64,000 bases of DNA from Syncephalis fuscata S228. Its lineage: Eukaryota; Fungi; Zoopagomycota. The stretch spans positions 124,001-188,000 of the forward strand of contig JAHLTZ010000011.1 of NCBI GenBank assembly GCA_025786725.1. The letters are read 5' to 3'. Positions 4,154 through 59,171 of this stretch are shown here, piece after piece (positions within the stretch are counted from its first letter, which is position 1; every line of letters starts with the position of its first letter). The position numbers and the translations under genes were made by a program. A model generated the notes under the pieces. The model was not told the DNA's origin, searched no databases, and saw nothing but the letters and a program-made list of their open reading frames with translations.

Positions 4154-4482
4154 ACTTTAGCATTCAAGGCCCCTTTTTGTTAAAGTAGATACAAGGAGAA
4201 TAATTTGTTATGATGACAACTGTTTCTATGGGCGTTTTAAATAATAAAAAACACAGTACTATTGCAAGAGTGAGCTACCATGGAGACAGGCACAAATGTG
4301 ATCAAATACATAGTAGTTATACAAATAAAAGGCAGCCAGCTAATATGCAAGATTGATATAATGTCGAGTACACCAGAAGATCTTGCATAGTCGATTATCC
4401 AATTGCGCAATTAATTTATTCTAAGCGTACGTAATTTTTAATATTCAATTTAATATTTAAAAATTATTGCTTGCGTTTAATC

Positions 4483-7400
4483 ATGGACCGGGGAACATCG
4501 CGCAGGCAAGCTAGAGCGGATGGCCGGTTTAACGCCCTTTCTCTGCGCAACATTCTTTTAGGCGCATTTTTAATAAGCATCCAAGTGAGCGTCGGCACCG
4601 ATGCAAAATTACAACTGCCACCGAGTCATTTGTTAGACAGACGTACCCTCCCCGATGAGCATAGCAAGCCGTTTATTGTGTCAAACGCGTTCATTGCCGA
4701 ATTTAAAACTGTACCTGGTAATCTTAATGAAGTGGAAAATGAACATGATATCTTTCGTACGGCCATTAAAGACGGACAGTTTGAAATTCGTGAACGTTTA
4801 GCGTTAAAATCATTGCTAAACGCCATTTCATTTGAGGCCACTACTGAAACGGCCAATCGCATTGCCAAACTACCTATGATCAAAAGTGTATGGCCAATGG
4901 TAAGCGAGGATATTGATGGTTAAGGCGTGTATTTTTATTAATTCATTGATGAATGATAGGTGGCACAAAATCGTCCCCGTGTTCAGGTACACTCTGTACC
5001 CAATGTTCAGGGACTAAAATTCGCCCATGCCATGACCGGCGTTGACCGTGTTCGGCAGCGCTTGCAAAAGGCGGGCGAAGGCGTTAAGGTTGGCGTGGTT
5101 GACTCGGGTATAGATTACATGCACCCGGCATTGGGTGGCTGTTTTGGCCCAGGCTGTCGTGTCGCTCTGGGATGGGATTTGGTCGGTGATGACTACACTG
5201 GCAATGGTCGTAATCAGCCAATTCCCGATGCTGATCCACGCGACGTTTGCAACGGCCATGGAACGCACGTGGCCGGTATTATCGGCGCCAACGATCCATC
5301 TTTCCAGGGTGTAGCACCTGAGGTAACGTTGGGTGCGTATCGTGTATTTGGCTGCAAGGGCAGTAGTGAGACAGATGTTGTTATTGCCGGCATGGAGCGG
5401 GCCCACCAAGATGGCATGCAAGTTATCAATATGTCTTTAGGCGGTGGCAGCTCCTGGTCTGAATATCCTGATGCTGCCGCTGCCGAAAGACTGGCTCAGC
5501 TTGGTGTCGTTGTCGTGGCTTCGATGGGCAACGACGGCGATAAAGGCATGTGGGAAGCATCATCGCCTGGTCTAGCTCCTAGTGTTATTTCTGTTGGCTC
5601 AGTAGATAGCATGCGCTACCAAGCATTCGGACTGCGTGTAGATAATGAAAATCTACCACCTATGGGTAAGTTATCAGAACAGTGTAATAATAGCTACTAA
5701 TTTATTGATGAACTACAGAATATCTTAGTGATAAAGAAACACCTCTTGAATTAAAATCTGTCCCCATCACATTAATTCAAAGTTCAAGTGATCCAAATGG
5801 CTTAGGCTGCGATAGACTAAGCAATAGAATTGCTGGCAAACTAGTCATTATGCAACGAGGTAACTGCACCTTTAATATTAAGGTAAGTAACATATTAGTA
5901 CTTTATGTTACCCGTACTTACCAATGTGTATTTATATCTATATATAGGCAACCAATGCAAAGGAGGCAGGTGCCATTGGTGTATTGGTATATAACAACAT
6001 GCCAGATGACGTGTTTATTCCTAGTGTAACAATCCCCAACTCTATTCCAGTTGTTGGTCTTTCGCAGCTTAATGGTCAGCGTATCAGCAGCTATTAGAGC
6101 GTAAAGACGAAGTTACGATTACATTCCCAAATTCGCTGCTTACATTCGATAATCCGAATGGCGGCCACATGTCTCGTTTTAGTTCATACGGTCCTGGACC
6201 TGAGCTTGAAGTGAAGCCGGACGTCACAGCACCGGGTGGCTTGATCCGCTCTACCTATCCACTGCCAATGGGGGGCTACCGTACCTTGTCCGGCACTTCT
6301 ATGTCCTCTCCTTATGTGGCCGGTGCCGCTGCTCTTTACATTTCAGCCAAGGGCAAAATTTCTAATGCACCTGCTGAAATTCGCCAAATGTTCCAGATTA
6401 CCGCCAAAGCTATTACTCAAAACAATCAAGCTGACAGCGGTTTAACCTCAATTGTCCGTCAAGGAGCCGGTTTATTGGACATTGATGCAGCTATCAGTGC
6501 TACTACCCGAATTACCCCCTCGCGTATTGGACTTAACGATAGCCGACATGGCAATTTGATAAATGAAGAATTTGGACCACATACTGTCACAGTGACGATT
6601 AGCAATACACAGTCCATTCCAGTGGACTACACCATGTACCATGCCCCTTCATTGGCCATTCAAGGCTATATAGAAGGGCGTGCATTAAAAAAGCCGGATG
6701 TTTTGGGGTCATATGCCTCTGTTACCATTGATAAAAGTGAAGATGGTTTATTAGATGAAGCGTCGGATAAAAACAATGAACGTATTGGTGGCACAGTCCG
6801 CCGTATTGTCCGCTCTAATAGCAATCCAGTGTTGGATGGAGAGTCTACTAGCAGCAACTCTATTCAGCAACAATCAAAGCCCACGCTTGATGATGAAACA
6901 TTTGTACAAGAAATGGGATTGGACAAATCCGAAGATATGACAGATGGTAGCGATAAAGCCATTTCACAAGCCAATAATGCGGGCAGTTTTATGTTTAAAT
7001 TTACAGTGTCTGCTAATAGCGAGGCAGACATTACAATGAATATTCGACCACCAAATCTGCCTGAAGCAGATCGTTGGATCTACAGTGGTTTTTTTAATAT
7101 ATACGGCAGTAATCGTGATGCACTGCACGTTCCTTACATGGGTCTTTCCGGCAATTTACATGCTCAGTCTATTCTTGATCGTAATGGATTCCCCTATCTT
7201 ACTAGGCTTGTTACCGAGCCAGGTGTTGGAAAAGTGAAGCATAACGACAATCATCGTGAGAGACACACACAATGCCTCATACGACATCTAAAAAATATAG
7301 CGAATTTGAATTAAGTGAGCAAGAAGACGAACTTGATGCCGAAATGGCAGAAAGCGACGATTTTGATACTGAAGACATCTTTGATCAAGAAGAACAAGAA

Positions 7401-8150
7401 ACACGAATGGGCTTTTCTATAGACAGCAAGGAAGCTAATAATACTGTTATCAGCGATAATCCATCAGTAATCCAGCAAGATACCCGATCATCTCGACTTC
7501 GATTGCGAGTACGTTTAACACATCCAACTCGTGTACTTCGGGTGGATGTTCTTAAGATGGATATAAATGATCCACAGAGAATACCAACTAATCCTAGTGG
7601 CAGCACTATTGGTATTCTGCCCAATGCCTGGATTACTTATTTAGGTCGTCATTCCGATGATACTGACGACTTTTCAACAGATTTTACATTTGATGGCACT
7701 TACACACCACTTGGTATGGCATCCAAAACGCTGTTTACCCCCAATCAGCAGAGTGGTTTTACACTTTCTAAAGGAATTGCTGATGCCGAACGCAACACCA
7801 GCAGAATAACCACCTTACCTGATGGCTACTATCGACTCAAGGTGGTGGCACTACTGCCGTTTGGCAATGAGAACCAGCCATCCGATTGGGATGTCTGGAA
7901 TAGCCCATTGCTTCGATTGTCAACGCTTTCAAACAACGGTACTGGTCCTCAGGCGCCACGCACTAGCCCTTACGATGCGGCAGATGGTATGCTTGAGTAT
8001 AATCGCCAGGTTAGTATTATTAAACCAGCACGTTCTGTGCTCAGCATGGCGCTTGAAAGGCAGTTTCAGCGTGTCCAAAACTTCAAACAGCCGGTAAAAA
8101 AGGATAAAAACAGCAATAGTAAATCGTGGAATGGGCATGTTCCGATTTAA
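4483..8150 (+). CDS. Secreted subtilisin-like S8 serine protease with prodomain, PA domain and C-terminal Fn-like region; 3 introns and two apparent single-base frameshifts
   Basis: Catalytic triad motifs VVDSG, HGTHVAG and GTSMSSP. PA motif 'IAGKLVIMQRGNCTFNIKATNAKEAGAIGVLVYNN'. Introns 4900-4959, 5666-5718 and 5883-5947. Frame breaks near 6085 and 7265. Confidence 0.92.
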
Positions 8151-8416
8151 TTCAATGTAATCAATTCTTTTGTTATCTTACTCTTGTTAGAGTGCGTTGA
8201 AAATATGCATTATATATTTGATGATTTTGTCAGAATAAAGCTTTAAATTTAATAATACAATAGTATGGATCTATAATTAGCCTTGGTAGTACAACTGATA
8301 TTTATAATCAACCAGCCAATACCTTTGGTGCAAAGGCTATTGAATAAAAGAACCACAAAATACTTTCGTTTCATATAATCGTTTTTTAAACATTTTAGTA
8401 TCATTTAGCATCAAGC

Positions 8417-8583
8417 ATGCTTTTAAGCCATCTTTGTGTATTTTGGTGCTGATCGCTACGACAGCATTGGCCTATCCGACCATGGAATCGGATTTATTTT
8501 CAAAACTGAGCACTGCCAAACCAGCTGATATTGTAACTTCGGCGTTAGTATCTCAATTTGGTTATAAGCATGGGTTGCTATAA
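8417..8583 (+). CDS. Putative small secreted peptide (~55 aa), needs one extra T in a homopolymer
   Basis: Adding one T to 'atgctttt' gives MLFKPSLCILVLIATTALA-YPTMESDLFSKLSTAKPADIVTSALVSQFGYKHGLL*, a signal peptide-like N-terminus ending in A-L-A. An AATAAA lies downstream near 8683. Confidence 0.35.
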
Positions 8584-10319
8584 TCAAGCCCAATAACAAT
8601 GATCAACATATGTCTACAAATAACCTTTACAGCAACATATATGTTTATACATATACGTGTGTATATAGCCTTATGTCTTTGCAATAAACATTTTCTTTAA
8701 AATTAATTAAAAATATATGTTGAATAATAATTTGCTTATTGCCATGTAAAATCTATCCGTTGAGTTAGACCTCAGTTTGTATTGATTGCAAAATGGCCGT
8801 GTGTGTGTGTTGAATAACAGTGCAATGAAGTGGCTTGCAAATACGTCATGGTTTATCCATGACATTACGGATAAAAGTCTTCTAGATTTTACTCTAATCC
8901 TTGAAAGCATTGTTCTGATCAAATAATTGATGTGATTTGCTTTAAATAGATGCCGTAAATGGCAATCTGCCATCCCAATACACGGGGGCCATAATTGACA
9001 TTACGTTTTGAGCTTTATGAATCGTGTAGCGTATTTCCACAAACGGAAATGCCATATGTTTTGGTTACCATTTTGCCATGATTATACAGCTGATTCGTAT
9101 GCTAAATAAGAGCCGGTGCACACTTATCGATGCAGGCGGGTATTTATTTCTAACGTCATTATCTAGTTCTTTTGAACTAAAGCAAATATTTCTACGTTTT
9201 CTTTTTCATGACTTATACCTTGGCTATTACACGAATGCTCGCCTTTTGAATCTTATTGCTTATGCACTATCCTAATTCTAGCCTACTTTATTATTCTACT
9301 GTTATATTAGACCTCACAGCTTTTAGCAACCATATTATTTAACTGCAAGGTAAGCAATTTGGTGTCTCCCTGCTACTGCAAAGTATTTTAAAGTCTTCAT
9401 GGCTCTTTCGTGACGGTGACAAGGATGTAACTTGGATATATTTTATGCAGCGCTTTATTTCTTTGTATAAAGCCTGTACATTATATCAACTGCACATGCA
9501 CGTTGTAAGGTAGTGGCCCGCCTGTTTCATAATATTATGAGACACGTTTGTATAGGCACCTGTCGCTACCTGAAAACTATTGCCACAAATACATAATGTT
9601 TTATTGCCTCTTCCCTTAGCGTTCAAATTCATAGCAAGGCCTCTGGCAATTTTGTTTGCACTTGTTTCATTATACACAATATGGTCGATATAGCCTGCTA
9701 AAATAATCTCATATATCGCTTCATACCAGTGTTGTAAAATTACTTGTTGGTGCCAGAGGCTACCTTTCAATTTCACTCGTTTAACGTCTAAATAACACCA
9801 GTACGTAAGGTGTAACCTCGTTCTTCAGCACGTGGACTATAAACCAGTAAAGTGACTTATTGTTGGTTAATTGTTACACCAGAGTCGACTGATTAATATA
9901 GAATAGTATTCTTTTAATAAGTTGAACTAATCTATTGTGCTGGATATATCCAAAACATTTCTCCGCATTCGAGCTCCGCCACCTTATACGACTTACTGAA
10001 ATTGCCTTTTATTCATGCTATTGATAATAGTTTGGCTGTTTTCCGATCCATTGTCACTACACTTCTTGCACCACCACCACCACCATCTCTTTACGTCCTT
10101 ACCTTCTACTCGTCTTGTTATGAATCATTGAACTATCAAAGCTTATGAATTGGTGTTACTGCGTAAACATCTCTATCTCCTCCACCCTCTGTTTCCTCTT
10201 TATCGCGAAAAACGATCACAACAAACATATACACCAACCAAATAACAAACTAACGCGACACTAGGCGCTGTGTACCCATTTCTGTAACGTCTAGACACCA
10301 CCGTCTAGACACGATATCT

Positions 10320-12407
10320 ATGGCACAAATATCTGACTCAACATCCGAACAAGTGAGCTTTATTGTATGCGTGATTTCTATCACCATCTACGGTACTGGT
10401 ATTCTAGCATTGCTAGTCGCCTTCTATCATCGCAAATATCCACTTCTTAAGGCAAAACATCTGCCTCTACTTGCTCTTTCACATTTTGGTGCTATTCTCT
10501 GGAATGTTGGATTTTTACACGCTTCAAACTTTCTTATTCTACCCGCTCGATGGGAACTATGTGGACTTTGGGACATTTGGATCCAATGGGTATTCGGCGT
10601 AATGTTACTATCAGGAGTGCTTATTTTACGTCTTTACTCGCTCTACCGGGTGTTTGTTCAACGTAAAAGTGTTACTGTCAAAGAACTAGTTATCGTTTCA
10701 ATCTACTACTATTTGCCAATTGTGCTCTGTGCCGTATTTTTCACAATAATGCCCAAGGTCGGCTCGTGGTACAATCCGGTCACGAAAAAATGTCAGGTAA
10801 ATGCAATTTACCAAGGAACAGCATTTGGTATTGTTTCGCTTGCTTTAATTGGTCTAGGCGTAAGTAGCACACATAGCTTTATAGTTGTATACTAATAGTA
10901 ATTAACAACACAGTGGTTAACCTACAACCTACGAGGCATTCGCCGATCATTTAATGAATTTAAAGAATTACGTATTGGATTTTTCTTAGTATTATTGGTA
11001 TTTTCCGTCAATGCTATCCTGGTCATGACACATCTTAGCCAATCTATGTTAAATCGTTGTATTCTAGCTGTTTTCAATGTGCTAGCTGGCAATCTTTACT
11101 TTTGGCTTACACTGGGTCGGCCTTTGTATGGCTGCTTATTCCAGCGCCAGCAATATCTTGATAAGTTCCTTCACACACTTGCACTTGACGGTGTTTACAC
11201 CGAAGATCTTTCAAGTAGCGACGGCGGAGCTACTAGCTATGGCCATTTACGCCGTGCTCCGTCATATCGTGGCTACACGGAAGAAGATTCTCCGGCTATG
11301 GCAGAAAAAGGAGGATGGCCAAGTAAACAGAATGGCACTCAACGATTGTCGCAAGTCGGTATGGACTCTCATATGTCTATAATGAACGTTTCTATGCCTA
11401 CCAAAATTGCCGCACCCGTCCCGTTAAAACGTATCCGCCCACAAGAAATGATGAATAAGTCAAAGACACCTGAGCAGTTATCGATAAAGTCCGGCAAGAC
11501 TATTGATGCACATAATGAGCCTCGTTATGAAACATTAAAGGACCATTCAGCAGCATCAAAACCTTGTGTTAATCGCCATTTAAGTCATGATGATATGACG
11601 GAGACGCAACGTATATCTCGTGGCTGGACACTTTCTCCAGTGTTATCAAGTTCACGGTCTACATCGCAGCCATCACCAACACCATGGATTGTTGATGATA
11701 CACGGCCCACGTTAAGTTTGCATGAATTACGACAAATCTTAGTAGAGTCCGAAATGGCCCGTTCCACTGAAAGCCTTACTCTGTATAACGCCGTTCCTGT
11801 ATTGTCGAAAAACGACTCGTGTGCATCGCTTCGTCGTAGCACAGATGTCGAGCCATCTAGGCCTTTAAAGGCTGAATTACACTTGAACACACGGACAGGA
11901 ACCTGTGACACCATGGCATTCTCCGCTACTAGCTATCGGTCCTACTTGACAGACACATCGCGAAAAAGCTATGAAATCTATGACGTTTATGAAGAAGAGC
12001 ACGACAATAACCACGAACATTGTGAAATGAATAGACATAGAACAGCAACAATTGCCCAACAAGAGTCATCACGCAATGGTTTATCGCCTATAAACACTCA
12101 TCGTCCATCTTACGAGTCCGTTTCTTCTCCACGCTCACCTCGCTTTGCACTGTCCCCACGCATGCCAGTGCGTGTATCAATGTCACCATTAATGCATAGA
12201 GAAATGGCTCAGGCCAATGGATGTTCTGCCACTTCACTGCCACCACCACCACCGCTGCCATTATCGCTGCCAGCACTATCTCCTACAACATCAAGCCGTG
12301 GCCAAAGTAGCAGCAACAATAGTAGTCCAACAAGCTATAATCGTGCTGATATTGCTTCTATTCAGCGTACACCATCTGCAGCTTCGCGCCAACAACGCTT
12401 TATCTAA
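10320..12407 (+). CDS. 7TM GPCR-like receptor (class C-like/7TM-RGS-related TM domain) with long disordered Ser/Pro-rich tail; one intron ~10860-10913
   Basis: Seven hydrophobic segments and motifs 'RKYPLLKAKHLPL', 'LILRLY' and 'LRGIRRSFNEFKEL'. Clear paralog at 27462-28784. Confidence 0.8.
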
Positions 12408-13139: not shown

Positions 13140-13995
13140 CTTTTATTTGTTTACTACTGTAACTAGAATACACATTTGTTTATTGAACATGGGGACAAGT
13201 GGTGAGTTTTATTTAATTATCACATTATTACATTGTGTGATTTGGTGGTCAAATGGCTGCATTTAATAACATTAATCTATTGAACATGATGATGGGTGGT
13301 GAGTGACAGCAATCATCAAATACTCATCATTGTAGATTCATTATCCAGTATACATATAACCAGTACATATATATATTCTATTCATTTATATCACTTCCAT
13401 TCCATTTCACGTTACTATGTATCATTCTATGCTATACTAGATACATTCTACTGTTTATATGTCCCATTACACTTTATTCACTCTATTCATTACATTATAT
13501 ACACTATAACTTTAACATCGTTTTATATGCTTCTCACCATACATTTATCATTCTATTTATCATTCTATACTCGCCTAGCCTTGTTCTATCCAAAACTATT
13601 ATTATCTCTGTTCTAGCTTTATTATTAATAAATTTTGGCTCATTTACCTCATTCATTTAGCAAGCTATATGTAATTGAACCCTATAGCAATATGGTCTAT
13701 TCAGTATATTATAGAATACTATATGATAGTATATGATAGTATATAATAGTATATGCATATATTGTTAACAATATAGATAAATATAGGATATATGTATATT
13801 GAATAATAAATATATGACTATGAGTATTTTAAACTTTAATGTTATTCATCACTTATCATCATGTTCAATAGAAATATTAATAAATTTAATCATTTGACCC
13901 AAGTCATATCACCTTTTGATAATCCAATCATTATATTTCTCATTACTCAGTTTTATATTCAACAAACAAATATCTAGTTCAATTAGACAAATATT
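13140..13995. repeat. Long imperfect inverted repeat (fold-back), arms ~13140-13460 and ~13680-13995
   Basis: Left arm 'ggtcaaatgg...tctattgaacatgatgat...aaatactcat' pairs with right arm 'atgagtattt...atcatcatgttcaataga...catttgacc'. Outer 'actaga...atttgtttattgaa' pairs with 'ttcaacaaacaaatatctagt'. Confidence 0.75.
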
Positions 13996-22916: not shown

Positions 22917-25385
22917 TTAGGCAAAATGGTCACGACGGCTGTCGTGATGGTCGCGCCAAGCAGCAAGTTCGTCCATTTGTCGTCTCCACCAGCGGTTCAT
23001 ACGAGCTACCGGCGTTAATGGCTTTTTATGGGATAGATATGATGCTTTTTTCAATCGGCCAGAGCAGCTTTTATTACCATGCTGACTAAATACCACATCC
23101 CAAGGATTACCACCTGCACCTTGGCGTTTTGTCATTGCTGAGTAGCGTTCGCTAGCTGATGTATTATATGCCATAGCAATTAATTCCTCTTCAGGATTAT
23201 CGTCATTGGTAGCCATTTCGTCAGTATCCATGTCAAGTTCGTCTTCTGCATCGGAATGTAATAAAGAGTTAACATAGCGCGGGAAAGTATTGCGATAAAG
23301 CAAATCAAGCACAGCGTGATATGCTTCGTCAAATATTGTTGGCTCAATATGACCCGAGGTTAGCGCATCGCGAGCTCGGCGGCGTACGCCATGATCGACA
23401 TTGACTTCGAGAAGTGCACCTTCGGCCAAATAGACGTAGTAGAACTGGCGGTAATCTTCAGCAAGCCAATCAGGCAATGGGCCATTATTGACAAATGAAA
23501 TCATTTGTTCATTTCGTTCGGTAAAGACTGAGCCAGGGCCAATGGTCATGTGGGATGGAGTACATGTAACAGGTGTACTAATACGATCACTCATCGTGGA
23601 AGAGGCACGACTTGATCGAGTTGTATGAAGTGTTGATGTCGGCGATAATGATAATGGCATTAGCGGTATTGACGTGGTGGCTGGTGACACTTTTGTGGTG
23701 GTAGCAAATGGTGTTAGATTTGCATTGGCTGATGCAGTTGATTCATCCATAGGTGGCGATAAGCAAAACGCCGGCACTGGTAGTGAAGGCATTGCAGGTG
23801 CTTCAGCCAAACGTGTAGCACGTGCACTTGCCGTGCTAAATTGCCGTGATGCAGCTAAAGATGATGTGCGTTTTGTAATGGTTATGCGCGGTGTTGTTGG
23901 ACTTGAAAGTATTGAGGCGCTGCCTTGATAAGTCGATAACTTTACGTGCTGTGCCAATTCAATCATTTCGCTTTTATGGCTATTATTGGAAATAAAACTA
24001 GAGGTATTGGAAATAGGTGATATTGGGCGAGACTGCATGGCAGATGGTGAAATGCTCGATGTCGCAAATGGTTTTGTCGTTACGTCAGCTGCCGTAGTTG
24101 CAGCTGTAGTCGTTGGAATTTCAATACATGATAAGCGTGGTAAATTCCAATCAAGTGCTACTTTTGTCGTATCAACTTCTTCAGCACGTGCTGCATCATC
24201 CGCCATATGATAGTGTTGTGGCGAAGTAGGCGCAAACTCGACCGTGCCTGGAAGGCCCAAAGCCCGCATGGCCAATGCAGTCTGCATTGCAACATGTGCT
24301 GCCTGAATTGTGCCCCATTGTTCAGCGGTGGTTTGTTCAGCCTTCAATCGCTTTTGCTCTTCGCGTTTCATTTGCTGGCGTTTAACTGTTTCCGTACGTT
24401 CTTTAAGTGCTTGATATTCTTGAATAAATCGACAATTTTCTAGAGAAAAATCAGCTTCAGCAAGCTTTTCCAAACGTCGAAATGCCGTGGGATTTTCTAA
24501 TGCCCGGTAGAATTGACTGCGTGACAATAGGCGACGTTCCAATCGTAGACGTAGTGCACGGCGTACTGGACGAACTACCGATACTACATGCACTGAAAAT
24601 AGCATGACAGCCAGCCAGCAAATGGCATCGACTTGGTGTTCAAGTGCTGGCACGCTTGTCCATGTAAAGTAGATAGGTATGATAAGCAGTGTGATAGCCA
24701 CCGTAAATTGCAAGTCACTTGCAATGTTATAGGCATCGCGTAGACCGACAAGTAGCCAGACAATGATCGGACATAGAATGGCCATAAAGAATCCAAGCAT
24801 AATGTAGAGTGGTATATATTCCCAGTTACTCCAGTTGTGATGGCCGACATCTAGCGGTACAACTCGATACCTTGTAGACAAGCACTGTACTAGAAGCAAA
24901 CATATAAGCGTACTAATACCGATCGCTGCCATAATCCCCGTTAGCGTCATGTCACCTCGAGGTGCACGTCGACGACGAAGCCAGTTCTGTTCGCGATGTA
25001 ATTGAGCACGCGCTTCGTCAGCGTTTGCTTTGGCTGCGGCAGCTGCATTGCGTGCTTTGGCACGTCGAATGTCAGCAAGAAATCGTGCACGCCAAACACG
25101 GCCCAATAACGAGACAGTCCATGCGGAAAATCCAATATAGGCCCCCCATAATGGTAAAAACGAGGGAGTCCCCGAGGGTGAGGATGCTTGAACGAGAAAT
25201 ATTGTACTAACACCTGTGGACGCAATGGCACCTACCACCGTAAGAGATACGGAGCGTTTACGTAATTCTGGTGTGTCGGGTGCAAAGTAGTAATAGCCCA
25301 TTGTTGTGACAGTATAAATGGCTGCTAGCAAATAGGCTAGCACGAGGTAGACAATACTCTCGATAGGACCGGGTTGTCGATTCAT
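22917..25385 (-). CDS. 7TM-RGS protein with a split RGS domain, intronless
   Basis: Seven TM segments, then the RGS N-half 'ALENPTAFRRLEKLAEADFSLENCRFIQEY' and C-half 'FYYVYLAEGALLEVNVD...IFDEAYHAVLDLLYRNTFPRY', separated by a ~300-aa Ser/Thr/Ala-rich insert. ATG at 25385 chosen over the upstream TTG. Confidence 0.88.
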   Translation of the reverse strand: MNRQPGPIESIVYLVLAYLLAAIYTVTTMGYYYFAPDTPELRKRSVSLTVVGAIASTGVSTIFLVQASSPSGTPSFLPLWGAYIGFSAWTVSLLGRVWRARFLADIRRAKARNAAAAAKANADEARAQLHREQNWLRRRRAPRGDMTLTGIMAAIGISTLICLLLVQCLSTRYRVVPLDVGHHNWSNWEYIPLYIMLGFFMAILCPIIVWLLVGLRDAYNIASDLQFTVAITLLIIPIYFTWTSVPALEHQVDAICWLAVMLFSVHVVSVVRPVRRALRLRLERRLLSRSQFYRALENPTAFRRLEKLAEADFSLENCRFIQEYQALKERTETVKRQQMKREEQKRLKAEQTTAEQWGTIQAAHVAMQTALAMRALGLPGTVEFAPTSPQHYHMADDAARAEEVDTTKVALDWNLPRLSCIEIPTTTAATTAADVTTKPFATSSISPSAMQSRPISPISNTSSFISNNSHKSEMIELAQHVKLSTYQGSASILSSPTTPRITITKRTSSLAASRQFSTASARATRLAEAPAMPSLPVPAFCLSPPMDESTASANANLTPFATTTKVSPATTSIPLMPLSLSPTSTLHTTRSSRASSTMSDRISTPVTCTPSHMTIGPGSVFTERNEQMISFVNNGPLPDWLAEDYRQFYYVYLAEGALLEVNVDHGVRRRARDALTSGHIEPTIFDEAYHAVLDLLYRNTFPRYVNSLLHSDAEDELDMDTDEMATNDDNPEEELIAMAYNTSASERYSAMTKRQGAGGNPWDVVFSQHGNKSCSGRLKKASYLSHKKPLTPVARMNRWWRRQMDELAAWRDHHDSRRDHFA

Positions 25386-27461
25386 AGGTTTAACGTTGAA
25401 TAAGCTGATTAATAGTTTGACATTAAAAGCTGTAGTATAAACTAACATCCAACAGACAAAAATTGCACGCAAACAAAAGAAACACAAAGCTCTAGTCTAT
25501 AAGTTGAATAAACACAATATAACAGCTCAGCGGCGATGAATCTTAAGCAGCTGAGGTATCGTTTTAAATATCGTTATTGGTATAAAGTTGGCCCTTGGTT
25601 CAATAGCACGCTTGTAAACTAACAATAATAACAACTATAAGATATTCTACTGTTTTCTTTAAGTACCGAATACTAATAGTGCTGACGAGATAATAATAAT
25701 AATAATAGACTAATGATAATGATAATGACAGAGTATTACGAAAGTGGTATAAAATAAAGCGTAGAACAAAACAAACTGGTACTTAAGCGTAAAGTGCCAA
25801 AAAGAATAGAACAAACTATATTACGGGTAAAAAGTTTGCTTATGAAGAAAAAGACATAACTGTACCGACTGCTTCTAATGGAACACAGCAAGTGGGCGGG
25901 TGGTTCGTTAGCAAAGTAAAAGAGAGTTGATATGATAACGGTGTCGTGGTGGCGGCGTCAAGTAAAGAAGGCGATAGTGGCAAGAGATGCCGTTTAGGCG
26001 GAGTGAAAAAGTAGCGCTGGAAAAGATGCAAACTTTCGTGCTAGCAAAAGGCGAGAATTATAAAAAGGCTCTGGCAGTCAGGATAGTTCGGAGTCAATGA
26101 CTCGATAAAAAGAAATAGCTTTGCGGTTTATAGAGGCCATGTGTGTTCCAAAATGCTTAAAGAGATTCTCGTTCCAAAACGTAGCTACACGTTTTCACTC
26201 CGCGGATCACATTCAAATAAGGCAACGTATTTATATCAACACATGTGTTTTTATGTTTTATATGGGACAGGTACCAATTCATTTGAATTTATGCGCACGC
26301 GCTTAGATAAATAAATTTAATAATAAGTAAAATTAGTTGTACATCAATATCTCTGAACAATAAATCGACATCGGCAATAATGGGCCAATAAAGAATGGCC
26401 AGGGATTGTACTAGGTTGCACATATTACAATAATAAGGGCTACATCTTTCAATGTAGTGGCGTTTTAAATGGGCGAGAATAGCAATAATGGTTGATCATA
26501 TCAGTATTTCAAACATTATTTCATAATAGTGGATATAGCCATTATACAAGGCTATAAAATATACATGCTATCATATAAAACACTTGGCAATAAAGCATAG
26601 TTAAATAAAATAGCCGTAATGCAATACACTCAAATAATTGGCTAATTCTAAACATTCTAGTCGCTCAATTACTCAGCCAAGATAATACTAACAACAAACA
26701 CGATTTGAAAACTTTATTTCTTTATTTAGTACATAGTAATAAATGATACAACCGTGACAAACCGTAGCATCAATAGTAAACTATTGGCTTTATACTAAAT
26801 TGAATTTAATAGTTAACTAATATACAATACGATAATATATATATATCATTTTTCTCGTCTTTACTCGCCATATCTATATTTCTTAGTGCAAAACATTATT
26901 GTCAAATAATACTATTTTCTATTGTCAAATCAATCTAAATTAAAGATAATCGACTATTGTAATTTAACTATTTAATTACATTGTTTATTATTGCATTGAG
27001 TTCTATTAAATAGTTTGAAATGCTTATAGAAGTATTTTGTGCTTTATTGTTCATTTAACAGAAATGGCTTTATAGCAAGAATGCGATGTAGTTGGCGTAA
27101 CGCGAAATAAAAGCGAGAGAATTGATGCAGACGGTACTACGATTACTGAAAATTAATGACGGAGTGCAGCGTAGTAAAGTATACTAATTAAAAAAATGGA
27201 TACACCTAGATAGGGGAAATCTAGCGCGCGCTATTAAGAAGGACAGAATGGTAAATAAGCGAGTAATAAGTGGTGATGATGGTGGAGAGGAACAGGGTCG
27301 TAATAACAAAAGAGCTGTTTGAAATCGTGTTACAATAAACAGGATAATCTATTGAGAAGCGAGACGGGTATGTACGTATTATGGTGTACACACACGCGCG
27401 CACGCATCATCAGACATGCAATATGCGTATTGATTGGACAAAATAGATAGAAGCTTTGCCA

Positions 27462-28784
27462 TTAAACCGGCGACCCATAATGCTGTCCCGTAGCATCAGT
27501 TCGTAGTGGTCTTACACGACCACCACCATTATTTTTAGCGTTATTACTAATAGCTGCTGCTGCCGCTAATGAAGCGGTCATTTCTAATGATTCATCGGTA
27601 TCTCTCGTGAGATTATTTAAAAAATTTTGCATGCATTCTTCACGACGAAAGATGTGTCCGTAAAATGGCCGGAAAAATACCAGCCCAAAGAAAAATGTTG
27701 ACGTAAATACGTTCTATAATACAACAATGCGGTTAAATAGACTGAATCTAATTAGCTAGTAGGCTTTAACTTACAAGTAATATCATTGAATAGACACCCC
27801 ATGCACTCCAATGATATTGATTTAAAATAATAGCCGAGTTCCAAACAACGCAGAATATCAAGGCAAAAGAACCAAAACATAACTCACGAAACTCGTTGAA
27901 CGCACTGCGCACATTACGAAGCTGCCAAGTGAAGTAAATGACAATAAGAGCACAAATGCCCGCCATGCTAAAGAATAAGCATTTGAAAGTTAACGTAACG
28001 GAGCAGCCGGTACTATCATCTATCTTGACGGCAAATCTAGGAATAGCACTTGATGTAATGCCGATAACACCCATGGGTATACAGAATATTAGCCAAGGAA
28101 CTACTATAGGTCGCTTTGAAAGCGATTGTTGAAGCAAGAACACATGGCGAACAGTGTATAGTCGGAATATGAGTAGTGCCAGAGTGAGTGAAGCGCCAAA
28201 ACAAAACTGCACCCAAACTATAATAATATACAAAAAAATAGTCATTAATTCGTAGTCCGATAGATGCAATGACAACAAAGTTGATAAATCACCCGTTGTA
28301 TCGCCTATTCTCCTCTCTTTTTTCACCGACTTACCCTCCCATAACGAACAAACGGACCAAAGACCCTTATAACCGAAAACGCCATTGGAATGCTGCAAAG
28401 AAGACCATTGATCAGTATTTTGATCGCTTTTATGCAATGCATCAGGAAAATCTTACTTACCATCATGCCAAGCCACCAGAGGAACGAGCCTAGTTAATAT
28501 TAATTGGTTGTATAGTAATAATAAATATTTAAAATAAAATTTAAATTAAATGTTCAATTTAGTTATTGTAAAACATTATTGTTATTAGTGGATAGTCATT
28601 GAGAATAATCAAGTCACTTACTTAAAAGGAATAGGCCCATAATAGGAACATGTTTTGCTTTAAGTGGCGGATAGTTGCGATGATAGTAAATGTAGACATA
28701 AGATGAGAAACTAATGGCAAATAATAGCGAACAAAAAAGCGTCAGCCAGATAGTTTCGGGAGTCGTAAAAACATATGCGCCCAT
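27462..28784 (-). CDS. 7TM GPCR-like receptor, paralog of 10320-12407, short C-tail, 3 introns
   Basis: 'RNYPPLKAKHVPI', 'LLIFRLY', 'LRNVRSAFNEFRELC' and 'FFRPFYGHIFRREECMQNFLNNL' align with the 10320 gene. Stop at 27462-27464. Confidence 0.82.
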
Positions 28785-51634: not shown

Positions 51635-52183
51635 ATGGTGTATAATTAAATATGCCATAGTTGTATGCGTTTATTTTACTTTACTTTTCATTGCTATATA
51701 AACACCAATAGCATTATTGAGCTAATAAACTACAATATACTCTTGTTGCACAACGATATAATTGTTATTAAAAAAGCATTTAGTGTAAATTGTGCATTTG
51801 CTTAAATATTCTTTTGGTTTATTTATATTTATATTAAGGTGTAGTTGTAAATCAGTTAAAATGGTATAAAAAATGAATATTAAGAATATTGTGGTCTAAA
51901 TCAATTCCGTTCGAATTAACTCAATTAATATTATACATATCGGCAAATAGTTTATCTCAATAGTTAATTATCTAATTTAATTCTCCAGGGCAGTAAATCT
52001 TTTTACCATCAATTGTAATGATTTGAGTAATTAATGTTGAAATCATTATTACAATAAACATTAAGTAATATTATTATTATATTTCATAAAACGATATAAT
52101 TATAACAGAAATTGTGTCAGTAATAATATTAAACATTTAAATAAATAATGTAACATACTATTTGATTTCTTTGGAACATTTGA

Positions 52184-52778
52184 CCAATTATTATTGTTGT
52201 TAGTCATGTGTACAAAAATTGATCGAATATTAAAAAAGTCATTGGTCATGATTCCATGTCATTCCATATTAATTGTTGTTGCATCCATGTACAATATGGA
52301 TATTGCATTTAATGATCTCTTTTATTTTTCGACCTTTTACTGTTGTGTTTTGAGCATATTTGCAATGTAAGATACTTATCTATGGTGACAAGAAGGTAGA
52401 AAGACTAGCATTTCTGATGTTCACTATTGTTTTGAGCATTTTGGTATCAACTTATAGGCGCAATTATTTGCCAACCATTAATGAAGCAAATGACCTTCAC
52501 CATATGCAATAATGATAGGTTGAGTGTCTTCACCAGGAAGATCTTGTGGCGAAACTGTAACCAGAATATACGGCATGCCGTTGAGATTACTTGAACAGGT
52601 GTTTATGTAAAATAAGAGAATAAAGACTAGGGATTAAATATGTTTTTATTGCTGTTCAAATACGCATGCTATTTATATTGTTATATTTGGCATTATCAGA
52701 TAATATATTATTGAATAAAAAATAAAATGGCAATAGGAAAAGAAAGTGAAATAAATAAATAAAAAATATAGGAGTCAA
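52184..52778 (+). repeat. ~590-bp direct repeat, copy A
   Basis: From 'ccaattattattgttgttagtcatgtgtacaaaaattgatcg' through 'aaataaaatggcaataggaaa', near-identical to 57855-58458. Confidence 0.92.
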
Positions 52779-54046: not shown

Positions 54047-54130
54047 GAGAAGATTGAAGTAAAACCAGGCAGGTTGAAATCAAGGCCGAACAGGTTGAAA
54101 TCAAGACTGGGCAGGTTGAAATCAAAGCTA
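54047..54130 (+). repeat. 21-bp tandem repeat (core caggttgaaatcaag), 3-4 copies
   Basis: 'caggttgaaatcaaggccgaa caggttgaaatcaagactggg caggttgaaatcaaagct'. Confidence 0.8.
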
Positions 54131-54269: not shown

Positions 54270-54277
54270 TATAAATA
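54270..54277 (+). promoter_or_regulatory. TATA box of the micro-exon peptide gene
   Basis: TATAAATA ~140 bp upstream of ATG 54413, followed by a pyrimidine-rich leader. Confidence 0.5.
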
Positions 54278-54412
54278 GCTTGCAAAATATACACAACCAA
54301 CTGCAATATCATCATTACACTCTACTTCTTGCTATACACACTCTACTCTCCACTATACCAACCACACTCTACTATCTCTTTTATTTGTTTGTATTAACAA
54401 ATTAGTATCACC

Positions 54413-56227
54413 ATGAAGCTTTCCATTGCCGTCGTTTGCACCGTCGTTGTGACTTTGACAGCCGCTACAACCATGGTTGATGCTAAACCAACCATGGTGG
54501 ATGATAAACCAACTTTGGTTGGTCGTGGTATGTTTTAATGACAATAGATATAGCGTATTATTGTGCTTACTAACAGTATTTCTAACTTAATAATAATAGC
54601 TCGTAAGTTGCATTATATATTAACTAACTATTCACTAATTATGTACCATGTATTATGCGTATAAATGACTTAATATTAATAGTGGGTAAGTTGTATTATA
54701 TATTGACTGACTATGCACTAATTATGTATCATTTATTATTGGTATAAATAACGTAATATTAATAGAGCGTAAGTTGTATTATATATTGACTAATCATGCA
54801 CTAATTATGTACCATGTATTATGCGTATAAATAAACTAATATTAATAGCATGTAAGTTGCATTATATATTGCCTGACTATATACTAATTATGTATTATGT
54901 ACTATGCGTACAACACGCTTAATATTAATAGGTTGTAAGTTGTATTATATATTGACTGACTATGCACTAATTATGTACCATGTATTATGTGTATAAATAA
55001 CGTAATATTGATAGGGCGTAAGTTGCATTATATATTGACTGACTATACACTAATTATATATCATGTATTATGTGTATAAATAACTTAATAATAATAGGGC
55101 GTAAGTTGCATTATATATTGACTGACTATACACTAATTATGTACCATTTATTATGTGTATAAATAACTTAATAATAATAGCTCGTAAGTTGCATTATATA
55201 TTATTTATTTTATTTTGAAGAGCTTGTGAGCCCCGCTGCGCATAATTAAAGAATTTGCGCTGCTTCCCACTATATTTGGACTTTTCCAAACTTTTAACGG
55301 GTGGACTGCCACGTTTTTGCGCAAAATCTGGTCCATATAGATTTTACACGGGGGCCATCTTCCTTTAAATGGTGCTACACAGCACTATTCTCTTGAAGTT
55401 GGTCCCAATTGGTTTTTCCTCGGCTATTCTGGCCAAGGTCTTGTTTCCGGACCTACTTATTGGTTCTGGTTTGCAATTTGTTAACTAGAGAAAACGGGGG
55501 GGGATTTTTCATTAAGGATTGGTTCAAACCTCAGTTTGAACCCGGAGCCTTCAGCTCGGGAGACGCTGCCTTACCAACTGGGCTAGCAACGTCCCCAAGT
55601 TGCATTATATATTAACTAACTATTCACTAATTATGTACCATATATTATGCGTATAAATAACGTAATATTATAGGGCGTAAGTTGCATTATATATTGACTG
55701 ACTATATACTAATTATGTACCATGTATTATGTGTATAAATAACGTAATATTAATAGGGCGTAAGTTGTATTATATATTGACTGACTATATACTAATTATG
55801 TACCATGTATTATGTGTATAAATAACGTAATATTAATAGCATGTAAGTTGCATTATATATTGCCTGACTATATACTAATTATGTATTATGTACTATGCGT
55901 ACAACACGCTTAATATTGATAGTGTGTAAGTATTATTATATATTGACTGACTATGCACTAATATGTACCATGTACTATGCGTATAAACAACTTAATATTG
56001 ATAGGGTGTAAGTTGCATTATATATTGACTAATTATGCACTAATTATTTACCATTCATTATGCATATAAATAACGTAATATTAACAGGTCGTAAGTAGTA
56101 TTATACGTTGACTGACCACATATTAACTATGCTATTTACTGATTGTACCGATTATTTAATATTAATATATTGATGACTTATAAATTAATTATATGACATA
56201 TAATATATATTTGTAAATACAGCATAA
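54413..56227 (+). CDS. Secreted 53-aa prepropeptide encoded by 16 exons, fourteen of them 3-nt micro-exons: MKLSIAVVCTVVVTLTAATTMVDAKPTMVDDKPTLVGR-ALEPCWRPRRPLWCP*
   Basis: Exon 1 is 54413-54527 (gtatgt donor, phase 1). Micro-exons start at 54600 ctc, 54683 tgg, 54766 agc, 54849 cat, 54932 gtt, 55015 ggc, 55098 ggc, 55181 ctc, 55674 ggc, 55757 ggc, 55840 cat, 55923 tgt, 56005 ggt and 56088 gtc; each is flanked by YAG and GTAAGT. The last exon 56223-56227 reads 'ca taa'. Confidence 0.8.
54590..56120 (+). repeat. 83-bp tandem array (80-nt intron + 3-nt exon), ~14 units, interrupted by a SINE
   Basis: Approximate unit: gtaagttgcattatatattgactgactatacactaattatgtaccatgtattatgtgtataaataacgtaatattaatag + NNN, recurring with an 82-83 nt period. 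Confidence 0.97.
55204..55596 (-). mobile_element. tRNA-derived SINE (~393 bp) with 18-bp target-site duplication
   Basis: The minus strand starts GGGGACGTTGCTAGCCCAGTTGGTAAGGCA (A box), contains CCGGGTTCAAAC (B box) and ends in an (AAAAT)n tail. TSD aagttgcattatatatta at 55186-55203 and 55597-55614. GC content is much higher than the flanks. Confidence 0.9.
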
Positions 56228-57854
56228 TCAATGGTTTCAAGACATCAGCATTGGTAGTGCAATCAAACCACTATTCCAATACACTATAGGTATATATTCG
56301 GTGAAAATCAAGATCATTTGACAACTACGCCGTCCAGTCTATTTATATATCAAGTTTTGGCCAATGCTCCGGTTTAGCTAGTTTTTAATCAATGGAATCA
56401 TTATTTTATCAACAGGCTTGCAATTAGTTGTTTCTATTCAACTGTGCAAGCTTATAGTAATAAATTTATGGTTCCATCTTAACTATATCTATAATCATGT
56501 TCTATTTGCATCCAATAATTGCCAAGTATTAATCAAATAGTTAAATTAACAAACTGTGTATGATTATATCATGTAAGCTATAAGCATATATTAGTATGGA
56601 TAGTAGCAAAGCTATTATTATCCTATAACCAAATAATAGTATGCTGAAATTAGCATAAATATGTTTTTTAATAAAACATGGTAACAAAGTATAGGATATT
56701 ATAAAACAAAATAAATAGACAAATCAAGTACGTGAATAGTGATAACAAAACTATACTGTATGCAATTGACCAAGAGTGATGAACGAAATAAATTAAAATC
56801 TACTAAAAGAATGCAGTTAGCAATAAACTTTTAGCTTTTATTAGTATAGCTTTTACAGTTTACAATATTAATTATATACACGGACATATGGTATATGTAT
56901 ACAGGATAGATATGTACAGTGCAATAATAATGATAAATAAATAGTTTATCACCATTGACACTCACTACCCAATTTCATCAACAATAAAACGAATTGTTGA
57001 TTTAAATGCGTAACTATTATAGTTATTTAACTGCCAAATCACATTAAACAACCAATAATATACTTAATATTATTGAAAAGTTATTTTTATTTAGTTAATA
57101 AAGATATCATAAGATTTAATACAAATCAAGTGGTTTAAATAATCCGCCACAGCACCCTCTTAAGCTTCTTTTGCCATGTTCCACGACTTTTCTAAATTAT
57201 GACACTGGAACAACTATCGCAATGTTTAGGAATGGATGCTAAAAGTAAACTGTTTTAGTTTGCCAATGATAAATGCCATGTTGACGGCATTATTTTGCAT
57301 ATCTTCACTCTTGCTTGATACACCAACCAATTAATTTGAGTTAATCAAAGCAATAATACTTTTATGTAATTCGGAATTAATTAATTGCTATATCTGATAA
57401 TTGAAACGCTCTAAACCAGTCTGATTTTATTTGTTAATTAAATTTAAATTTAAAAAATATTTATTAGCTAAATCATTTTTATTTTACATTACACTTTCTT
57501 CATCTTGATAGCTGTTTTAACTACTAGTTCAATACTATTAATACTAGTTTTACATATTATATTTTTGTATTGTATTTGTTAGTTGCATTTGCCACCAATA
57601 TATTGTTGGACATATTTTGGCAAATAGAACACGATCGGCATTACTGTTAATATTGCTACAATTAACTAAATTACGTAAATAAAGTTTAGATTAAATTTGT
57701 TGTATCTATTGTGATTATTTTTTCAAAATCCCCAATTCTACTTTAAGTCTCATATTTGAGTTTTCTAAGCAAATCGGTTTCAATTGAAAACATGTTGTCA
57801 TGCACAAGAAACATAGTTATAATGTTTTATTTAACTACTTTGAAATTTATGAGG

Positions 57855-58458
57855 CCAATTATTATTGTTGTTAGTCATGTGTACAAAAATTGATCGAATA
57901 TTAATAAAAGTCATTGGTCATGATTCCATGTCATTCCATATTAATTGTTGTTGCATCCATGTACAATATGGATTATTGCATTTGAATGATCTCTTTTATT
58001 TTTCGACCTTTTACTGTTGTGTTTTAAGCATATTTGCAATGTAAGATACTTATCTATGGCGACAAGAAGGTAGAAAGACTAGCGTTTCTGATGTTCACTA
58101 TTGTTTTGAGCGTTTTTGGTATCAACTTAATAGGCACAATTACTTTGCCAACCATTAATGAAGCAAATGACCTTCATTATATGCAATAATGATAGGTTGA
58201 GTGTCTTCACCAGGAAGATTTTGTAGCGACAGTTGTAACCAGAATATACGGCATACCATTGAGGTTACTTGAACAGGTGTTGATGCAAAATAAGAGAAAT
58301 AAAGACTAGGGATTAAATAGTGTTTTTATTGCTGTTCAAATACGCATGCTATTTATATTGTTATATTTGGCATTATCAGATAATATAATACTGAATAGAA
58401 AAATAAAATGGCAATAGGAAAAAAACTGTGAAATGAGTAAATAAAGATGTGGGAGTTA
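57855..58458 (+). repeat. ~590-bp direct repeat, copy B
   Basis: Near-identical to 52184-52778 with scattered SNPs and 1-nt indels. Confidence 0.92.
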
Positions 58459-59171
58459 AAATACAGTAGAAACATTAAAGTCATTTAATACTAAAGTTGT
58501 TATTATAGAGCATACTACCAATAAATTACTGAGTGCAATAGGAAATACAAGCAAAGCCAATGTTTTTTAAAGACAAGTGTAGTCATAGAAGGTGTCATTG
58601 TTAAAATAATGAAACATAGTCATATTCTAGACGATGAAGCAATAGACCAATAGTTTATATGAATGAATAAATAGTGCGATGTTAATGCCAGCAGAAACAT
58701 GCACTGTATATTCAGTACAATGGCAGTGGTGAACCAAGGCCTTCTGATTTCTTACCACCTATTATTATAAAAAGCCAAACTGACACTGTCGCATCAACAT
58801 TATAATTAAATCATAACATTTTATTGTAAGTAAAATGAAACACTATTTAATATTTATTTTATATTAAAAATTGTGTTGATTAATTGACACTGATTGATTC
58901 AATCAGAGTTGATACGACACTACTTCAACAAATAACACTTCTTAGTAGTAAAAGCTGATCGACGGTTTATTGTTTATTATTGATTTTTTTGTCCCAGTTT
59001 AAAAATAGGAATTCAAAGTACAATAGCTATATATATTAAATTGGGCACTTGAACATTTTTCTCGTAAAAAAAAACTCGCATCGAATCCTTCTAGACTTTA
59101 CTTGTCGAAATATATGGTACAATTTATGTATTTGTTGGAAGGTTGATACATTTTTATTTGCACTCTCACTA

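Follow-up and report, generated by a model that had tools for sequence, protein, structure and literature searches.

Results

A putative gene with single-codon exons

We analyzed a stretch of 64,000 nucleotides from the fungus Syncephalis fuscata S228 (assembly GCA_025786725.1, contig JAHLTZ010000011.1), called the window here; positions are those of the window unless another locus is named. S. fuscata is classified in the Zoopagales, and Syncephalis species are parasites of other fungi. We found that positions 54413-56464 of the forward strand probably hold an unannotated member of a family of S. fuscata genes for secreted prepropeptides, in which the mature peptide is encoded with one codon per exon. 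The micro-exon gene model, with symmetric 3-nt exons in phase 1, is strongly supported by the comparison of paralogous DNA. The architecture is real, unannotated and, as far as we found in the literature, undescribed. The parts of the gene are the following.

54270..54278 (+): TATA-like box, ~140 nt before the ATG, in the 5′ region common to the paralogues
54413..54527 (+): exon 1, 115 nt, leader and pro-region, from the ATG to G/GTATGT; ends in ..LVGR plus one base
54528..54599 (+): intron 1, 72 nt, GTATGT...TACTAAC...TAG, with TACTAAC as the branch site
54600..55183 (+): first array block, eight 3-nt exons with 80-nt introns between them
55184..55673 (+): intron 9, 490 nt, originally an array intron of 79 nt, extended by a retroelement insertion
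55674..56090 (+): second array block, six 3-nt exons with 79-80-nt introns between them
56091..56222 (+): last intron, 132 nt, ends in CAG
56223..56227 (+): start of the terminal exon, with two bases that complete the last codon and then the conserved TAA (56225-56227)
56228..56464 (+): 3′ untranslated region (UTR) kept among the paralogues, to the AATAAA at 56459

Tandem Repeats Finder detected an 83-bp tandem repeat at 54583-56131, in two blocks of 7.5 and 6.5 copies with a match of 84-85%. A regular-expression scan for AG-NNN-GTAAGT found exactly 14 sites in the array and one in the rest of the 64 kb. The first-pass annotation of this DNA had described 3-nt micro-exons of symmetric phase whose codons are read across the splice junctions. 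This description was borne out, and the paralogues, including collinear ones without introns, back the model. All 14 micro-exons (starting at 54600, 54683, 54766, 54849, 54932, 55015, 55098, 55181, 55674, 55757, 55840, 55923, 56005, and 56088) have 3 nt and phase 1-1, and they are flanked by AG and GTAAGT. With its 38 codons and one extra base, exon 1 leads into the array in phase 1; each array codon, computed from the exon coordinates, consists of the last base of one exon and two bases of the next. Since several units were duplicated recently, no more than nine different triplets occur among the 14 exons. The predicted product would be the leader followed by ALEPCWRPRRPLWCP, a cationic peptide of 15 residues rich in Trp, Arg, and Pro, with two cysteines that could close a loop.

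When the units of the window were aligned, the three bases between AG and GT were the most variable of the 83 columns (1.7, 1.3, and 1.3 bits), and GTAAGT, an ACTAA motif and the acceptor AG were invariant. Neither strand of the array has an open reading frame (ORF) of note. Comparison with a paralogous locus (L002, see below) suggests that the first ~77 nt of the last intron are a decayed array unit that lacks its acceptor and exon, joined to the canonical last intron of the family. A clean seven-unit duplication of the array was considered and dropped, since the identity matrix backs only the pairs 1/8, 4/11, 9/10, and 6/7.

Upstream of the gene there are two 21-bp tandem repeats (54070-54125 and 54317-54358), which may be promoter elements. 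The second one sits in the 5′ leader region, which is shortened in one intronless paralogue (P0015).

Paralogous array genes in S. fuscata

A search with the 41-aa ORF of unspliced exon 1, and then with its profile, retrieved about 20 proteins that share the leader, all from S. fuscata; the profile matched proteins of this species only, among 1.84 billion representatives. None of them is the product of the window gene, which is therefore unannotated. The survey of the family covered the S. fuscata loci that we fetched, and it revealed seven further array genes. Five were fully modelled (L001, L002, L003, L005, and L006), and two partly (L015 and L016, whose first and last exons are irregular).

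In the seven loci, exon 1 has 94-97 nt and ends with RR (or RRG) plus one base at G/GTATGT, in phase 1. It is followed by 16 to 39 units of AG-NNN-GT(A/G)AGT with introns of 77-83 nt. The micro-exons have 3 nt, a few of them 6 nt, and the last exon opens with two bases and then TAA or TAG in the five fully modelled loci. In all six arrays, the window included, identity in the exon columns was 0.22-0.45, versus an intron mean of 0.69-0.88. The window gene has the family leader, an exon 1 that ends in phase 1 at G/GTATGT, and a last exon that opens with two bases and a stop codon; its flanks are 73-89% identical to those of the paralogues.

The leader (MKLSIAVVCT-) consists of Met-Lys, about 17 hydrophobic residues and VDA, and is invariant across the family. 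Judged by inspection, exon 1 encodes a putative signal peptide. A dibasic Kex2-type site directly before the mature peptide is a trait of the family: RR ends the pro-region in L001, L002, L003, L005, L006, L015, L016, and the intronless genes P0004 and P0011. The window copy is the only one with GR at this place, so dibasic processing may be impaired there, although this is uncertain.

At the seven array loci, the public gene models continue into intron 1 or into an inserted element. These are P0001 (L001, 5001-5223), P0002 (L002, 6001-6472), P0003 (L003, 6001-6319), P0005 (L005, 8001-8410), P0006 (L006, 8001-8406), P0012 (L015, 7001-7601), and P0009 (L016, 7001-7494). Since these models run past exon 1, the C-terminal halves of the seven proteins are artefacts.

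One more S. fuscata protein, P0016, has the same leader joined to a single-domain von Willebrand factor type C (SVWC) module (Pfam E = 4.7e-7), which indicates that the leader serves as a secretion cassette for unrelated cysteine-rich domains. Apart from this SVWC match, the natural paralogues yielded neither a family nor a significant match in searches of Pfam, PDB sequences, and folds. The paralogue P0015 is predicted to form a helix-loop-helix (predicted local distance difference test score, pLDDT, 70-83) without a significant PDB match. In cysteine-stabilised helical hairpins, two helices are pinned by paired CxxxC-type motifs; the window peptide has only two cysteines.

The terminal exon is also open in phase 0 for about 33 codons, with a shared TGA end, in the window (56223-56321), L001 (6885 onward), and L002 (11016 onward). 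This opening may be due to chance in a conserved 3′ UTR or may be a relic of another frame. Phase 0 as the real frame of the terminal exon was ruled out, since in all eight loci exon 1 fixes the reading at phase 1, and the TAA of this phase is where the intronless genes end.

Intronless paralogues and the coding status of the micro-exons

Three intronless paralogues, P0004 (in L004) and P0015 and P0011 (both in L007), translate exactly from contiguous DNA. They share with the array genes the promoter region, exon 1, the 3′ region, and the same conserved TAA; the 5′ region of the window gene is 88% identical to those of L004 and L007. We cut the intronless coding sequences in phase-1 register and aligned them exon by exon to the arrays. 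The alignment of L005 with P0015 had a z score of 7.2, with none of 300 order shuffles as good, and in it a run of five micro-exons equals 15 contiguous bases. P0004 is matched by both L005 and L006 as well. Read in phase 1, both arrays keep the six-cysteine framework of the intronless genes, CxxCxxxC...CxxxCxxxC. The cysteines are kept in 5/5 and 6/6 cases, at a synonymous divergence (dS) of ~0.75 and a ratio of nonsynonymous to synonymous divergence (dN/dS) of 0.5-0.6. In L016, 13 consecutive micro-exons spell CKC...CTSC, of which 10/13 are identical to the annotated contiguous P0007 and P0020 (z = 12). Collinear intronless paralogues with a kept cysteine framework indicate that the micro-exons are coding, and they are incompatible with a non-coding satellite. 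A search for transcript-derived spliced relatives of P0015 returned P0015 only.

Condition of the window copy and retroelement insertions

Intron 9 is 490 nt long because a 393-bp element resembling a short interspersed nuclear element (SINE) was inserted in it.

55186..55203: target-site duplication, 18 bp, left copy
55204..55596 (-): SINE-like insertion, 393 bp, whose A-rich tail adjoins the 5′ part of intron 9
55597..55614: target-site duplication, 18 bp, right copy

Further SINE-like copies were found in L001 (6255-6569), L002 (7508-7869 and 9104-9485), L003 (6748-7148), and L006 (8763-9092). All six copies present in the ~200 kb of S. fuscata DNA that we fetched are inside array introns, in one orientation, 13-26 nt past the donor, and those of the window and L003 are 96% identical. 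The different 5′ truncations of the six point to independent insertions with a strong preference for the sequence of the array introns. Scans of the window for tRNAs and Rfam families returned nothing, and ARAGORN calls no tRNA at the tRNA-like end of the insertion.

The insertion bears on whether the window gene is functional. The architecture could be real in the family while this copy is a young or decaying paralogue without function, which we consider unlikely, although it is the most probable of the alternatives. The retroelement in intron 9 fits such decay, as do the GR in place of RR and an internal 21-bp duplication in exon 1, where Tandem Repeats Finder reported the KPTMVD motif of the pro-region twice (54468-54521). 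The encoded peptide is short and partly repetitive, comes from recently duplicated units and has no relative that we found, and the gene is unannotated. Against this, all 14 donors are a perfect GTAAGT and all acceptors are AG, while 34 other intron columns vary; the chance that those eight columns stayed invariant is ~0.01. The frame is open to the conserved stop, the promoter and 3′ regions are conserved, and L002, L003, and L006 keep open frames despite insertions in their introns.

Evolution of the arrays

The intron pairs 4/11 and 9/10 of the window array are 99% identical and carry identical exons, and recent unit duplications appear as runs of identical exons with introns that are 96-99% identical. 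Some units of the paralogous arrays have lost their acceptor, have an exon of 2 nt or have a weak donor, and the few 6-nt exons look as if one intron had been lost precisely. Through unequal exchange between introns that are nearly identical, and through the death of single splice sites, whole codons would be added or dropped in frame, and the paralogues would diverge fast in the length and sequence of their peptides. A tree of the flanks places the window gene nearest to L005, the array of which encodes a very different peptide of 37 residues.

An origin by intron gain, in which copies of a self-propagating intron entered an intronless peptide gene at one codon after another, appears improbable to us. 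It would account for the non-repetitive exons of the long arrays, whose introns are related, and intronless members of the family do exist. However, no known mechanism inserts introns exactly every three bases and always in phase 1, and the clear recent unit duplications carry identical exons. The unit is absent from the rest of the 64 kb window, and we found no copies in the non-array parts of the fetched loci. In the flank tree, array genes are on all the major branches and the intronless copies are nested in two places, with weak support. The SINE-like insertions imply a source of reverse transcriptase. The tree favours arrays that are older, with introns that would have been lost later through a cDNA copy.

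Skip-safety at the level of chance

The first-pass annotation had proposed that every exon-skipping combination of this array stays in frame and free of stops. Its arithmetic is right. One exon begins with AG, none begins with AA or GA, and no exon that ends in T precedes the AG exon. By brute-force enumeration, all 2^14 inclusion patterns (16384/16384) reach the natural TAA at 56225-56227 and yield 6330 distinct peptides. The worked examples of recoded junctions, T+GG = W and C+AG = Q, are also correct.

The proposal drawn from it was that exons are included stochastically, at a locus shaped so that every skipping pattern is productive, and that one gene would thus yield a peptide library. 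The open patterns and their many peptides agree with this idea, as do the near-identical splice sites, and the micro-exon genes of Schistosoma vary by symmetric exons and alternative splicing (PMC10526429). Our results give it no support: skip-safety is at the level of chance here and absent as a trait of the family, and we regard such a library as a distinctly remote explanation. When the order of the exons was shuffled and the all-included reading kept open, fully skip-safe orders had P = 0.25. Drawing 14 exons from the pool of 143 in the paralogous arrays gave 0.26, and nulls based on base composition gave 0.23-0.67. Chance cannot account for the array itself, but it can for the skip-safety.

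It had also been suggested that paralogous arrays might avoid skip-generated stops more than expected, and the answer was negative. Non-adjacent hazards (T followed by AA, AG or GA) numbered 4, 49, 2, 39, and 25 in the five modelled paralogous arrays, versus shuffled means of 8.4, 38.7, 5.3, 32.6, and 27.0. The probability of counts as low as those observed was 0.17-0.84, with the long arrays at or above their shuffled means. In L003, L005, and L006, only 38-86% of the inclusion patterns are open.

Stops were purged at adjacent junctions only. All six modelled arrays have zero stops there, with order-shuffle P values of 0.63, 0.20, 0.059, 0.65, 0.079, and 0.059 (product ~2e-5). Moreover, the six-cysteine spacing kept between the arrays and the intronless paralogues needs every exon. 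Since adjacent junctions are purged, skip-only junctions are not, and the cysteine spacing requires all exons, selection acts on the mRNA that includes all of them. In fungi, the splice sites of short introns normally pair across the intron; this favours the closest sites and also speaks against a skipping library. Low-level stochastic skipping may nevertheless accompany full inclusion.

The possibility that the arrays are unspliced, as a minisatellite with splice-site-like motifs after a short ORF, so that only the intronless genes function, fits the public models that read through the first repeat unit, but it is hardly tenable, as the triplets of L005, L006, and L016 spell in order and phase peptides homologous to contiguous paralogues with the cysteines kept, the same conserved stop ends the frame in all modelled loci, and the triplet columns alone are hypervariable.

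Similar arrays on metagenome contigs

One scan for three consecutive units revealed AG-NNN-GTAAGT arrays on five very AT-rich soil-metagenome contigs with G+C fractions of 0.16-0.23 (L009-L013: WNFZ01329041.1, WNGF01236917.1, WNFZ01053292.1, Ga0137367_10077775, and WNGA01071791.1). They have 10 to about 40 units spaced 73-115 nt apart. The introns are tandem repeats without relation to the S. fuscata ones, and the exons have a higher G+C content than the contig. The arrays are putatively coding. An upstream exon of L013 begins with ATG and has its end in phase 1. The array of L012 continues in phase 1 into an ordinary exon with two in-frame TGA codons, after which comes a protein-kinase fragment (Pfam E = 1.2e-5); the kinase type may be similar to those expanded in Glomeromycotina. 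These contigs suggest that the single-codon-exon layout is not confined to one species.

Flanking repeats and neighbouring genes

The window gene is bracketed by a 630-bp direct repeat.

52159..52778 (+): left copy
57828..58459 (+): right copy, 92.6% identical to the left one

L005 is likewise bracketed (5301-5946 and 13170-13830, ~97% identical), and the whole bracketed segment of 6-8 kb is common to the window and L005. The bracketing repeats may be a route by which the family spread. We found no reverse transcriptase or integrase ORF between the 630-bp repeats. Elsewhere in the 64 kb, the stretches 4471-12407 and 22917-28437 hold several ORFs with class-C G-protein-coupled receptor (7tm_3) matches, one of them fused to an RGS domain, as well as a split subtilase gene; these are unrelated to the array. 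A PCI-domain protein is also encoded.

Discussion

The closest known parallel is found in the micro-exon genes (MEGs) of Schistosoma, which have 10-20 exons of 6-81 bp, mostly 15 bp, and unique introns of 100-5000 bp; their symmetric exons and the use of alternative splicing for variation are documented (PMC10526429). Like the S. fuscata arrays, MEGs encode secreted products of a parasite, have a first exon with a signal peptide and most of their coding sequence in symmetric exons of a multiple of three, and are missed by automatic annotation (PMC10526429). By inspection, the first exon of the window gene also carries a secretion signal, and its micro-exons are symmetric and a multiple of three in length. 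However, they measure 3 nt and its introns are 79-80-nt repeats, outside both size ranges of MEGs. In the family as a whole, the exons have 3 nt, rarely 6, occur up to 39 in a row and all in phase 1, in a fungus, and the introns are tandem copies of 80-83 nt, whereas MEG introns are long and unique. No sequence relationship is apparent: the leader profile retrieved S. fuscata proteins only, and no direct comparison with MEG proteins was made. The S. fuscata arrays take the micro-exon gene idea to a new extreme, and they are not members of the MEG family.

A single 3-nt exon can be spliced by the ordinary spliceosome, as in the Drosophila homothorax micro-exon (PMC7392893), and a paper of 2015 gives 6 nt for the smallest constitutive exon known at the time (PMC4674806). 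The isolated 3-nt micro-exons of animals and plants are single, usually alternative, and part of long genes; in S. fuscata, 14-39 consecutive ones make up the whole mature product. Our literature search found no report of tandem 3-nt exon arrays, in fungi or elsewhere.

Other systems share single traits with the arrays. Ratchet points of recursive splicing, as in Drosophila Ubx and in the recursive exons of vertebrates, have a 3′ splice site followed by a regenerated strong 5′ splice site. As in the arrays, an acceptor almost directly before a strong donor implies the stepwise removal of intron segments. However, ratchet points leave nothing in the mRNA, and the arrays keep three coding bases at each step: in the window, AG never abuts GT, and three bases always lie between them. 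Conotoxin-like superfamilies and Kex2-processed fungal peptides have a conserved signal and pro-region, a dibasic site, and a hypervariable, often cysteine-rich mature peptide. They resemble our family in having many paralogues in one predatory or parasitic genome, but their mature peptide is in one ordinary exon, and searches of the natural paralogues gave no sequence or fold match. Introner-like elements provide many near-identical introns in one genome, dispersed through unrelated genes, whereas the S. fuscata units are in tandem, within one gene family, spaced every three coding bases.

Several points weigh against the functional micro-exon gene that we propose for the window. Its peptide is without a recognisable relative, its leader ends in GR, whereas RR or another ending closes the nine paralogue leaders examined, and its intron 9 carries the 393-bp insertion. 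With 15 codons, its open frame taken alone has P = 0.63 and is weak evidence. There is no precedent for runs of constitutive 3-nt exons, and the spliceosome may struggle with a 5′ splice site that lies three bases from a 3′ splice site. A search for transcript-derived proteins of array genes found none, and the array-first direction rests on a weakly supported tree.

As we picture it from the sequence, the gene would be transcribed and all 14 exons most likely included constitutively, with the introns recognised by intron definition and taken out successively. Three bases separate the donor of each intron from the previous acceptor, so neighbouring introns can hardly be recognised together and a stepwise removal is expected. 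Most simply, this removal would proceed 5′ to 3′ during transcription, with the two splice sites of each intron pairing over its 80 nt. Within the intron, the invariant GTAAGT matches U1 in full, which would offset the absence of conserved exon bases. The product would then be secreted, and those of the paralogues would be cut after RR. From its composition we guess at an antimicrobial or host-directed role, and any activity of the peptide is likewise conjectural. The point of the layout would be evolutionary and not at the level of splicing: an array that generates peptide diversity in the germ line is more likely, in our opinion, than a skipping library.

Taken together, we suggest tentatively that single-codon-exon arrays are an overlooked architecture of early-diverging fungi, with at least eight genes in S. 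fuscata and further, unrelated arrays in metagenomes. In this proposal, which is ambitious and may well fail in part, up to 39 exons would be constitutively joined, the array would act as a germ-line generator of diversity at the level of codons, and leaky in-frame skipping would add variants. Standard annotation fails on such genes: 7/7 public models at array loci are wrong and the window gene is missing, and fungal genomes may therefore conceal a class of secreted peptides. S. fuscata is included in public transcriptome projects, so the question may be directly testable if RNA-seq reads of the species are available.

If the arrays are spliced, as the paralogues imply, they would contain the smallest coding exons possible, in runs longer than any others known, and would be a hard test for models of splice-site pairing, with a donor three bases from an acceptor dozens of times. 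The peptide would be encoded inside a minisatellite, where repeat instability gives only in-frame changes of single codons. This would be a simple route to the fast evolution of secreted peptides in a mycoparasite.

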